Source: Lepidodermella squamata (lineage: Eukaryota > Animalia > Gastrotricha). From it: a stretch of DNA of 64,000 nt. This document shows, piece by piece, positions 19,203-21,615 of this stretch (the first letter of the stretch is position 1; each line of letters starts with the position of its first letter). The translations under genes were made by a program, and so were the position numbers. The DNA lies in assembly GCA_047495785.1 (NCBI GenBank), contig JBLDXI010000001.1, positions 3,720,001-3,784,000 of the forward strand, written 5' to 3'. The notes under the pieces were generated by a model that saw only the letters and a list, made by a program, of their open reading frames with translations, was not told the DNA's origin and ran no database searches.

Positions 19203-19274
19203 TCCTTGGTAGTATAGTGGTTAGTATCCCCGCCTGTCACGCGGGAGACCAGGGTTCGATTCCCTGCCAAGGAG
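19203..19274 (+). tRNA. tRNA-Asp(GTC)
   Basis: TCCTTGG/CCAAGGA acceptor stem; anticodon arm CCCGC-CTGTCAC-GCGGG; GGTTCGATTCC B-box; poly-T terminator follows. Confidence 0.96.
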
Positions 19275-19437
19275 CATTTTTATTTTTATTTTTATTTTTT
19301 ATTTTTTTTTTATTTTATTATCTTGGTTGGTTGATTTTAAATTTTTTAAATTTAACTCCTCTCCATTTGAATAACAAAATTCGATAAGTGTCAAAAACAT
19401 GATATTTTATTTCAAATTTGTCAAAGTTGAAGAATAA

Positions 19438-20274
19438 TTAAAACCTAGCGCCAATAAATCGAAAGAACACCTCATCGTATTCTTCAATTGGAACCTTCAC
19501 GTTGATTTCAAGTGCTTTCCTTTTCTCAAGGAAAGCCAGCAAATCAGGCCGCTCGCGGTCGATGATCCCCAGCATCCACTGATTCACAACATCGGAATTC
19601 GGCGCATAATGATCTGCCTCAGGACTAGTGGCTGAAAGAGACTTCTTCTGTTCAACAAGCTTAACAACCGTCGAGTAGATCTCATCGCTAAATTTTGATT
19701 TAATGTGCTCCCATAACTTGGGAAAATTGATCTCGATCAGGTTGCCAGTTGGCTCGTTGTTATCGCCGAATTTCATCATTAAATACTCGATCATAGCGAC
19801 AGATTTGATAACGCAGAGGTACTTCTTGACGACAACCATCTCTTTCCCAGCAACGTTATCGGCGTAATTCCGCTTGCTCATAGTTAAATAATTGTTCAGC
19901 AGTGGAATTAAACGAATGTTTTGATGCAAAATTCGCCGGCATTCCTCAACCATCTCCGGGCAAGTGTTAAGGTAGACAATCGGAGACTCGAGCCATTCTA
20001 CAATTGTCGGGTTGATTTTCTGAAGTTGAGACAAGACTTTGGCCAAATCCCAGGCTTGAAAGTCGAATTTGTCCATTTCGCAGTCCAGAGTTTGCTTTTT
20101 CACCCCGCCGAGGGATAGATACTTCTTCCGATCGCGTTGAATGAAAACAAAACGGATGTCGTAATCCGACTCAACAGATGGCCAGCCCCAAGCTCGGCTC
20201 CCGATATCCACCGCATAAAGGATCTCGATATCATGCTCCAACTCCAGAGCTTTCAACGCCTCCAAAATACTCAT
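19438..20274 (-). CDS. RlaP/YcgL-like Pol-beta superfamily nucleotidyltransferase, copy 2 (intronless)
   Basis: ILYAVDIGSRAWGWPSVESDYDIRFVF (GS..DxD), DFQAWDL, NPTIVEWLESPIVY, KKYLCVIK. The first ATG is at 20274; the ORF-track start at 20322 is TTG. Confidence 0.85.
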   Translation of the reverse strand: MSILEALKALELEHDIEILYAVDIGSRAWGWPSVESDYDIRFVFIQRDRKKYLSLGGVKKQTLDCEMDKFDFQAWDLAKVLSQLQKINPTIVEWLESPIVYLNTCPEMVEECRRILHQNIRLIPLLNNYLTMSKRNYADNVAGKEMVVVKKYLCVIKSVAMIEYLMMKFGDNNEPTGNLIEINFPKLWEHIKSKFSDEIYSTVVKLVEQKKSLSATSPEADHYAPNSDVVNQWMLGIIDRERPDLLAFLEKRKALEINVKVPIEEYDEVFFRFIGARF

Positions 20275-20318
20275 ATTAAATGTGTCTATAGATACAAACA
20301 ATTTATTTGAACGAAAAT

Positions 20319-21170
20319 TCAAGCGAAAGTGATGCCAATAAATCGGAAGAAAAGTTCGTCGTAATCATCAAAACGTGGCCTATCGAGTTCGACCTTTTTA
20401 CGGTCTTCCTCGAAGGCTAACAAATCTTCCCGTTCGCGTTTTACAATACCAGATAGCCAGTGATTGAGATGCTCAATCGCTCGAATCGTGTCGTGACCGC
20501 CAGAGACTAACGCCTTCTTCTTCTCGATGAGATCAAGAACTGTTGAGTGAACTTCAGGAGTGACACGGTTCTTGAGTTGATCCCAGACTACGCCGAATTC
20601 GATATCCATAAGTTTACCAGCGGATTCGTCTAACGCTTCAGTTCTACAATCGCTGTATTGCATCATCAAATACTCGACCATTGCAACAGGGCGGACAGTG
20701 CAGAGGTACTTCTTAACGTTAACAAAAGTTTTCTTGTCGATGTGCTCCATGTAATGATTCTTCCCCATAGTCCTGTAGTGGTGGAGTAGAGGCATGATTC
20801 GGACGTTTCTGACTAGGACATGTTTGCATCCGTCAACGAATTCAGGACATGCGTTGTAGTAGAAAATTGGCGATTGCAGCCATTCGATAACGCTTGGGTT
20901 GATGTTTTGCAGGTGACCAAGCGCCTTTGCGATATCCCAACCCTGGTAGTCCCACTTGCCAATCTGGCCATCGATGACTTGCTTCTTGACGCCGCCTAAT
21001 GATAAGTACTTCCTGCGGTCGTTGTGGATGAAGATAAAGCGTATGTCGTAGTCGGAGCCAGTGGAAGCCCACCCCCAGGCACGGCTACCGCCATCGACAC
21101 AAAACAAAATTTTAACTTCATGCTTCTCCTCCAAATCGCGCAAAAGTTCCAGGCATCCGGCATCCGCCAT
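20319..21170 (-). CDS. RlaP/YcgL-like Pol-beta superfamily nucleotidyltransferase, copy 1 (intronless)
   Basis: ILFCVDGGSRAWGWASTGSDYDIRFIF, DYQGWDI, NPSVIEWLQSPIFY, KKYLCTVRP. ATG at 21170, with a TATAAAA motif about 80 nt upstream. Confidence 0.85.
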   Translation of the reverse strand: MADAGCLELLRDLEEKHEVKILFCVDGGSRAWGWASTGSDYDIRFIFIHNDRRKYLSLGGVKKQVIDGQIGKWDYQGWDIAKALGHLQNINPSVIEWLQSPIFYYNACPEFVDGCKHVLVRNVRIMPLLHHYRTMGKNHYMEHIDKKTFVNVKKYLCTVRPVAMVEYLMMQYSDCRTEALDESAGKLMDIEFGVVWDQLKNRVTPEVHSTVLDLIEKKKALVSGGHDTIRAIEHLNHWLSGIVKREREDLLAFEEDRKKVELDRPRFDDYDELFFRFIGITFA

Positions 21171-21615
21171 TTCCTCGTCGATTAAATTACGGTTGTATGA
21201 ACAAGTTATAACTCTACTAGGCAAAAGTATGTGTGAAATAAGGCTATTTTATACACACACATGCTGTAGGACTACGAAAAGTGATAAGCATATTGCATCA
21301 GAAAGTGTGTGTGCGTACAAAAGCATTGGATATCAATAAACCGTGAATCACGGATGAATCATCCCTCTCAAACGAGCAAAATCAAGTGAATGCTTGTCTT
21401 CACTGACTGTTTGCATCCGCACTGGAACCAGGTGTGACAATTGAAGCACGTGTTTAAAGCAAACTTCAGTTATTAGCTCTTGAAAACACAAATTGAAAGC
21501 ATTTCACATTTTTACTGTCTTTTTCTAGCAATTTATCGAAATAACAGAGTAAAATATCAACAAGCTGGGTTGTAGGAATAGTCGATGGTAAAATTTGAGA
21601 AGAAGGACCAGGTGA

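Follow-up and report, generated by a model that had tools for sequence, protein, structure and literature searches.

The biochemically characterised relatives of the genes reported here are the bacterial RlaP nucleotidyltransferases, work on which dates from late 2025 and covers bacteria only (PMC12776372). The enzymes of Pseudomonas fluorescens (PfRlaP) and P. aeruginosa (PaRlaP) are encoded between rtcB and rtcA and add one or two nucleoside monophosphates (NMPs) to the 3'-OH of RNA, the sole substrate class labelled by RlaP (PMC12776372). Three aspartates are strictly conserved in RlaP, and the preferred substrate is the 5' half of a mimic of a tRNA cleaved in the anticodon loop (PMC12776372). 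RlaP is needed to restore the aminoacylation of over-damaged tRNA after ligation, and eukaryotic members have been described as "a small number" (PMC12776372). Jumbo-phage genomics ties RlaP to RNA ligases, and the phage proteins are predicted to replace, ahead of ligation, the nucleotides that a cleaved tRNA has lost (PMC7824862). Here, we describe two adjacent RlaP genes, RlaP-A and RlaP-B (A and B in the following), in a 64,000-nucleotide stretch of the genome of the gastrotrich Lepidodermella squamata (contig JBLDXI010000001.1, positions 3,720,001 to 3,784,000), referred to as the window. The pair lies in an animal genomic context, results from an old tandem duplication and has retained all catalytic residues of the family, and its sequence relationships point to a branch of RlaP common to eukaryotes and giant viruses.

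The tandem RlaP genes

A and B are neighbouring, intronless genes on the same strand. The listing of open reading frames (ORFs) gave 20319..21224 and 19438..20322 on the minus strand, and the first ATGs were set at 21170 (A) and 20274 (B). These starts line up with the N-termini of RlaP family members in the alignment, and the start of A has a Kozak-like context (gaggaaATGg). The Pfam family PF10127 (RlaP) matches A with 123.8 bits (E = 1.3e-35) and B with 116.7 bits (E = 1.9e-33), both exceeding the curated gathering score of 23 bits. The two proteins also match phrog_14344, annotated as "nucleotidyltransferase" (E = 7e-41), and an NCBIfam search of the pair gave no match.

The glycine–serine motif reads GGSRAWG and IGSRAWG in the two proteins, and both contain SDYDIRF with the DxD motif. 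The third acidic block is present as WDYQGWDI and FDFQAWDL, and the C-terminal motif as NPSVIEWLQSP and NPTIVEWLESP. The signature of Pol-beta-type nucleotidyltransferases, defined by G28-S29, D40-x-D42, D74, and D79, is thus complete in A and B. Among the 30 most conserved positions of the family, 28 are retained in A and 26 in B, where the catalytic residues are intact. B deviates from the consensus at G77A, H131N, and R160K (A numbering), positions that are 95-98% conserved, while the conservative off-consensus residue D26 is common to both proteins.

The AlphaFold2 (AF2) model of A (pLDDT 94.1, pTM 0.91) is composed of an N-terminal nucleotidyltransferase (NTase) domain and a C-terminal helical domain, the terminal helix of which packs back on the NTase domain. 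The model superimposes on bacterial RlaP clusters as modelled in the ESM-Atlas, with TM-scores of 0.80-0.84 and a root-mean-square deviation of ~2 Å over 251-255 residues. In its C-terminal half, the fold is similar to helical bundles of the HEPN-like or KNTase-C-like kind. The solved structures that come closest to the model are two-domain nucleotidyltransferases, namely Hailong HalB (Z = 10.3, 14% identity), the AMPylation domain of DrrA (Z = 10.2), GlnE, and aminoglycoside nucleotidyltransferases (ANTs). The best viral structural matches are nucleotidyltransferases of Terrestrivirus (515 aa) and Yasminevirus (596 aa), with E-values of 6e-18 and 1e-15 and TMq values of 0.73-0.74. A sequence search of the PDB gave no match, the structure of PfRlaP not being among the entries searched.

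A and B are 50% identical at the protein level and 59% at the DNA level, with 40% identity at third codon positions. The proportion of synonymous differences (pS) is 0.79, beyond saturation, versus a nonsynonymous divergence (dN) of 0.39. In 20000 shuffles of gene A, no stop-free sequence arose. Since synonymous sites are saturated and both frames are open and conserved, the duplication is an old one, and neither copy has been lost. The two genes are sisters in the tree with support of 100/100, and the pair is a lineage-specific tandem duplication of which both copies are held by purifying selection. A local tblastn search revealed no further RlaP-like fragment in the window outside 19208-19266. 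The original prediction, made from the letters of the window alone, had described tandem intronless paralogues of about 280 aa that are diverged yet both open, with a GS-x-DxD core, a third acidic motif, and NPxxxEWLxSP, and had placed them in the RlaP family. This description agrees with our data in every point, including the family assignment, which is borne out by the two PF10127 scores.

Relatives and phylogenetic position

When 1.84 billion representative proteins were searched exhaustively with phmmer, 3249 homologues were found, none of them more than 41% identical; a word-indexed protein search gave 7 matches. The exact A and B proteins are absent from this collection. Eukaryotic contigs carry the best matches (40-41% identity, E = 1e-46 to 1e-50), while bacterial RlaPs are ~29-32% identical to the window pair over the full length and jumbo-phage RlaPs ~29%. 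The 28-kb contig of the homologue P0008 (40% identity, E = 4e-50) also encodes a FERM protein of the band-4.1 type and a carbohydrate sulfotransferase, and it has split exons. The FERM neighbour matches human 4.1-like 3 with E = 9e-60, and the contig looks animal. P0009 adjoins a PROPPIN fragment, and P0037 belongs to an NCBI eukaryotic assembly, where it is surrounded by TFIIE-beta, Rpn5, YEATS, and ALG11. The neighbours of P0043 are TLD and DHH genes. On the viral side, P0014 lies on a dense, giant-virus-like contig with MORN and DUF4116 genes, and P0002 has a nearly identical counterpart in the RlaP of a 103-kb viral contig from IMG/VR.

In an IQ-TREE analysis of 65 rows under the LG+C20 model, A and B fall inside a clade of 28 rows with support of 96/93, the interior of which is a polytomy. 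The neighbouring clade consists mostly of proteins of 500-556 aa and holds a sequence from a giant-virus metagenome-assembled genome (MAG), whose contig carries a class-II aminoacyl-tRNA synthetase and a SNAP homologue. We extended the tree, which is unrooted, with viral loci and with the best 38 of at least 567 bacterial and archaeal genome matches to an 8-sequence profile. All 38 labelled bacterial sequences, which come from GTDB, are separated from a 40-row group holding both clades by a split with 98% SH-aLRT support. Viral contigs are interleaved in the eukaryote/virus clade. An approximately unbiased (AU) test did not reject a topology in which A and B are united with the subclade of P0001, P0008, and P0040 (p = 0.386), so a single origin common with the animal-like lineage is possible.

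The closest relatives of the pair therefore lie on eukaryotic contigs, the sister clade includes a giant-virus MAG sequence, and the bacterial sequences lie across a well-supported split, suggesting that any transfer was ancient and took place within the eukaryote/giant-virus pool. Judged by these sequence comparisons, the affinity of the pair appears to be with the eukaryote/giant-virus branch of RlaP and not with bacteria or phages, and acquisition would most likely have occurred by ancient transfer within that gene pool. The label "prokaryote/phage-type" of the original prediction is imprecise in view of the eukaryotic location of the best matches, the position of the bacterial RlaPs in the tree, and the low identity of the jumbo-phage proteins. 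Its view of the pair as horizontally acquired, duplicated, and domesticated is supported in part: duplication and constraint are evident, composition and signals are host-like (see below), and a transfer into this lineage would be one possible origin.

The members of the long-protein clade (P0011, P0012, P0022, P0025 and related proteins of 500-556 aa, and L014:8471-9463) carry an extra C-terminal half of ~250-300 aa, which has no match in Pfam. On the dense contig of the 540-aa P0011, a 669-aa gene three genes downstream (L003:14830-16839) combines DUF924 with a PP-loop ATPase domain (ATP_bind_3, TilS-like) and a faint QueC match, domain matches that hint at a tRNA-modification function near RlaP.

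RlaP genes also occur in groups elsewhere. P0010 and P0077 form a tandem pair on a marine contig, beside a split P-type ATPase gene and a GT10 fucosyltransferase, and a related contig carries four RlaP copies in tandem. These head-to-tail arrays on marine eukaryote-like contigs (two genes at L008:7605-10226, four at L101:5039-10291), both located beside a split P-type ATPase, consist mostly of copies that lack the GS and/or DxD motifs. P0077 has the substitutions D40S, D74E, and K82H, while GADIRF, HHEIAF, or GSIVQF is read in the L101 copies, a loss of catalytic residues that suggests pseudoenzyme evolution. In several bacteria, the canonical RlaP of ~255 aa has a second, divergent protein of 295-363 aa in its vicinity or as its immediate neighbour (0-1 kb), as at L026:2035-3871, L054:1888-3732, L080:2989-4616, and L087:2986-5717. 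The N-terminus of these divergent neighbours matches PF10127 (E = 1e-22 to 1e-30), so paired paralogues may be a recurrent theme of the family.

Flanking signals and genomic neighbourhood

The coordinates of the pair, of the signals around it, and of the adjoining genes are collected in Table 1. Each of the two stop codons is followed by an AATAAA hexamer. From the window-wide frequency of AATAAA (9.1e-4 per base per strand), the chance of finding the hexamer within 40 nt of both stops is ~1.3e-3. The layout of the spacer would be compatible with an operon junction that is resolved by spliced-leader trans-splicing. Sigma-70 promoter-like and terminator-like sites were not above the level expected by chance.

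Table 1. Features of the RlaP locus, in window coordinates.
Feature	Position	Strand	Description
RlaP-A	20319..21170	minus	intronless ORF, 283 aa + stop; Pol-beta-type nucleotidyltransferase with C-terminal helical domain
RlaP-B	19438..20274	minus	intronless ORF, 278 aa + stop; paralogue of A
Spacer, A stop to B ATG	20275..20318	minus	44 nt; AATAAA, pyrimidine-rich tract, AG, 11 nt, ATG
AATAAA in spacer	20307..20302	minus	starts 14 nt from first base of A stop codon
Acceptor-like AG closing the pyrimidine-rich tract	20287..20286	minus	11 nt before B ATG
AATAAA poly(A)-signal hexamer	19406..19411	minus	starts 29 nt from first base of B stop codon
TATAAAA box	21247..21253	minus	83 nt upstream of A ATG; sequence motif only
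Acceptor-like ...TTTTGCCTAG upstream of A	ends at 21217	minus	read from sequence
tRNA-Asp(GTC)	19203-19275	plus	ARAGORN; convergent with B, 162 nt from B stop
Rhodopsin-type GPCR	15962-16843		next gene downstream of the pair
Cys-rich ORF, 374 aa	21616-22740	minus	445 nt upstream of A; run of 16 threonines

No terminal repeats flank the pair, and a transposon or cassette origin was set aside for this reason. The single notable direct repeat of the region (19450-19487 versus 20334-20371) corresponds to the conserved C-terminal coding ends of the two paralogues.

The domain scan (Pfam) covered 33 of the 51 window ORFs of at least 110 aa. The domains found are of metazoan type and include an SNF neurotransmitter symporter, a member of the tubulin-tyrosine-ligase family (TTL), a rhodopsin-type G-protein-coupled receptor (GPCR), RPE65, a cluster of F5/8C and LamG domains, EamA, and mitochondrial L24. 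Metazoan ORFs are located 0.4-2.6 kb away on both sides of the pair on the same contig. The original prediction placed the pair among intron-rich metazoan genes; the metazoan character holds, while the neighbourhood is compact with large exons and not conspicuously rich in introns. GC content, GC content at third positions (GC3, 0.55-0.56), the observed/expected ratio of CpG, and relative synonymous codon usage (RSCU) of A and B are inside the spread of the host ORFs. Sampled 31-mers were present at fractions of 0.61-0.77 in two sequencing runs from two studies.

Other features of the window concern its host genes. The 374-aa ORF upstream of A shows a weak, sub-threshold match to galaxin-like repeats (E = 0.006). 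Repeated ORFs with F5/8 type C (discoidin) and Laminin_G_3 domains occupy 25372-38065 on the plus strand and are probably duplicated secreted or adhesion genes, and the minus strand carries at 41785-55403 a tandem series, with five or more members, of EamA-family transporter genes or of exons of such genes. The CpG observed/expected ratio is 1.16 at 42.8% GC window-wide, with no sign of CpG depletion.

A tRNA-Asp gene convergent with the end of the pair had been noted in the original prediction, and ARAGORN located it as given in Table 1. The window contains two tRNA genes, and none was found within the fetched flanks of 13 related loci (eukaryotic, viral, and unclassified). The adjacency is therefore best regarded as coincidental, and a functional link between the RlaP pair and tRNA-Asp was set aside; the tRNA gene probably does not belong functionally to the unit. 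The use of tRNA-Asp in published assays is no evidence for a link to this neighbouring gene.

Proposed role, alternatives, and comparison with known systems

We consider it reasonably probable that A and B are a functional RlaP pair of the eukaryote/giant-virus branch that was anciently acquired or held, duplicated in tandem, and serves the repair of RNA 3' ends under operon-type expression. An ancestor of this animal would have held or acquired one RlaP copy, which was duplicated in tandem long ago, with purifying selection keeping both copies. By homology with the bacterial enzymes, A and B most likely add 1-2 nucleotides at the 3'-OH ends of broken RNA. The three aspartates, together with two metal ions, would direct one or two NMPs onto the 3'-OH of RNA that has been broken or trimmed, and the presumed preferred substrate is the 5' piece left when a tRNA is cleaved in its anticodon loop. 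A ligase encoded elsewhere, e.g., RtcB, could then restore a full-length, chargeable tRNA. Both genes would probably be transcribed as one unit from the TATA promoter upstream of A, and this unit may be resolved through trans-splicing at the AG before B and cleavage of the 3' end at the AATAAA of the spacer.

Several observations weigh against this proposal. In the eukaryote/virus clade, most members are labelled by the gene neighbourhoods of metagenomic contigs, the bacterial comparison consists of the best 38 of at least 567 matches listed, and the relationships inside the 28-row clade form a polytomy. Neither of the two runs that hold the k-mers of the locus is recorded as RNA. No RNA ligase, PNKP, RtcA/RtcB, or Hen1 was found among the scanned window ORFs; linkage to RNA ligases and repair operons is a trait of prokaryotic operons and not expected in an animal chromosome. 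Substrate specificity could have shifted, as the RlaPs characterised so far come from bacteria and share only ~30% identity with the pair. Finally, the fold neighbours include AMPylators and the defence oligonucleotide synthase HalB, and the fold alone therefore leaves the substrate unfixed.

The substrate is the point at which a different account of the pair departs from RNA repair. The RlaP fold could have been re-purposed for an immune or signalling nucleotidyltransferase, which synthesises short oligonucleotide messengers or marks viral RNA, or for an AMPylator of proteins or small molecules. Hailong HalB is a defence enzyme that makes oligodeoxyadenylate, and it leads the solved structural neighbours of A, ahead of DrrA, GlnE, and the aminoglycoside ANTs. 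The missing repair partner in the scanned part of the window, the three strongly conserved positions at which B is off-consensus, and the related eukaryotic arrays, which evolve fast and have lost catalytic residues as is often the case in conflict-related families, can be read in the same direction. Yet the PADLOC defence models matched neither protein (0 families for A and B), both sequence and full-length fold are nearest to RlaP proper, and RNA is the only class of substrate labelled in the biochemical study of the family (PMC12776372). On balance, we regard such a re-purposing as unlikely.

The remaining alternatives concern the origin of the genes. RlaP may have been present in early eukaryotes or animals and lost from most lineages, with no transfer into the animal at all. 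The several unrelated-looking eukaryotic contexts of the clade members, the animal-like contig on which a homologue adjoins a band-4.1 gene, the AU result for A and B with the animal-like subclade, and the fully host-like composition are in favour of such vertical inheritance. It is opposed by the very patchy distribution of the family, in which nothing above 41% identity emerged from the exhaustive search and eukaryotic members are few in the literature, by the viral contigs interleaved in the clade, and by the lack of synteny in common with the other animal-like locus; we therefore find it rather unlikely, if a somewhat stronger contender than re-purposing. A contaminant of bacterial, viral, or protist origin, chimerically joined to animal sequence during assembly, would account for two intronless genes of a mainly microbial family. 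However, the metazoan ORFs on both sides of the pair, the host-like composition and codon usage, the TATA and AATAAA signals, the presence of most k-mers in runs of different studies, and the lack of a further microbial gene nearby make an artefact very improbable, and the 50% divergence of the paralogues indicates a long residence together. Least credible of all is that a fragment of a giant virus was integrated and that A and B are its decaying remains without function, in spite of the affiliation of the clade with giant viruses: both frames are intact at saturated synonymous divergence, all catalytic residues are retained, no other viral gene occurs among the scanned ORFs of the window, and there are no extra fragments of the family.

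A bolder extension of the favoured repair proposal, which we regard as doubtful, is that giant viruses seeded several eukaryotes with RlaP and that the animal pair is a co-transcribed, possibly heterodimeric module for tRNA-end repair or antiviral RNA tagging. If true, a pair seeded by giant viruses would add a nucleotide-restoring step to the RtcB-type RNA ligation of animals. To our knowledge, no such step before ligation exists in the standard RNA-repair and tRNA-splicing pathways of animals or in model animals. If the pair is expressed and active, there would be non-model animals with an enzyme that rebuilds the nucleotides lost from broken tRNAs prior to ligation. The phylogeny points to a distinct lineage of RlaP, common to eukaryotes and giant viruses, that duplicates repeatedly in tandem and degenerates into catalytically dead copies in some protists. 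This lineage lends itself to the study of how genes pass between giant viruses and their hosts and of how pseudoenzymes evolve.

Among the known systems, the defence signalling synthases of the Hailong HalB or CD-NTase type are linked to the pair only by the distant likeness in fold to HalB, with no match to a defence model. Bacterial RlaP shares with the window pair the Pfam family, the three catalytic aspartates and GS motif, the two-domain architecture with a closing C-terminal helix, and close agreement of the models (TM 0.80-0.84). It differs in sequence (~29-32% identity) and in its position on the opposite side of the tree split, and the window genes are two diverged tandem paralogues in an animal chromosome. 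The Pseudomonas genes are linked to a ligase and a cyclase, whereas the window pair has no such neighbours among the scanned ORFs. Phage RlaPs (the T4 NrdC.11 class and those of the jumbo phages BcepSauron and CcrColossus) belong to the same family, as reflected in the phrog_14344 match, but are likewise distant (~29% identity) and co-occur with phage RNA ligases, a linkage not seen here.

The giant-virus RlaPs of the Klosneuvirinae type (Terrestrivirus A0A3G4ZQ79, 515 aa; Yasminevirus A0A5K0U9N0, 596 aa; and the GVMAG contig L014) provide the best viral structural matches, are 26-31% identical to the pair, and correspond in length to the sister clade of the window clade. In contrast to the window proteins, which are a bare module of ~280 aa, these viral proteins carry the extra C-terminal half. 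A parallel in gene arrangement is found in the eukaryotic tandem arrays with two (L008) and four (L101) genes, which belong to the same clade and are likewise intronless and arranged head-to-tail on one strand. These arrays arose by independent duplication, and most of their copies are catalytically degraded, whereas both copies of the window pair are intact.

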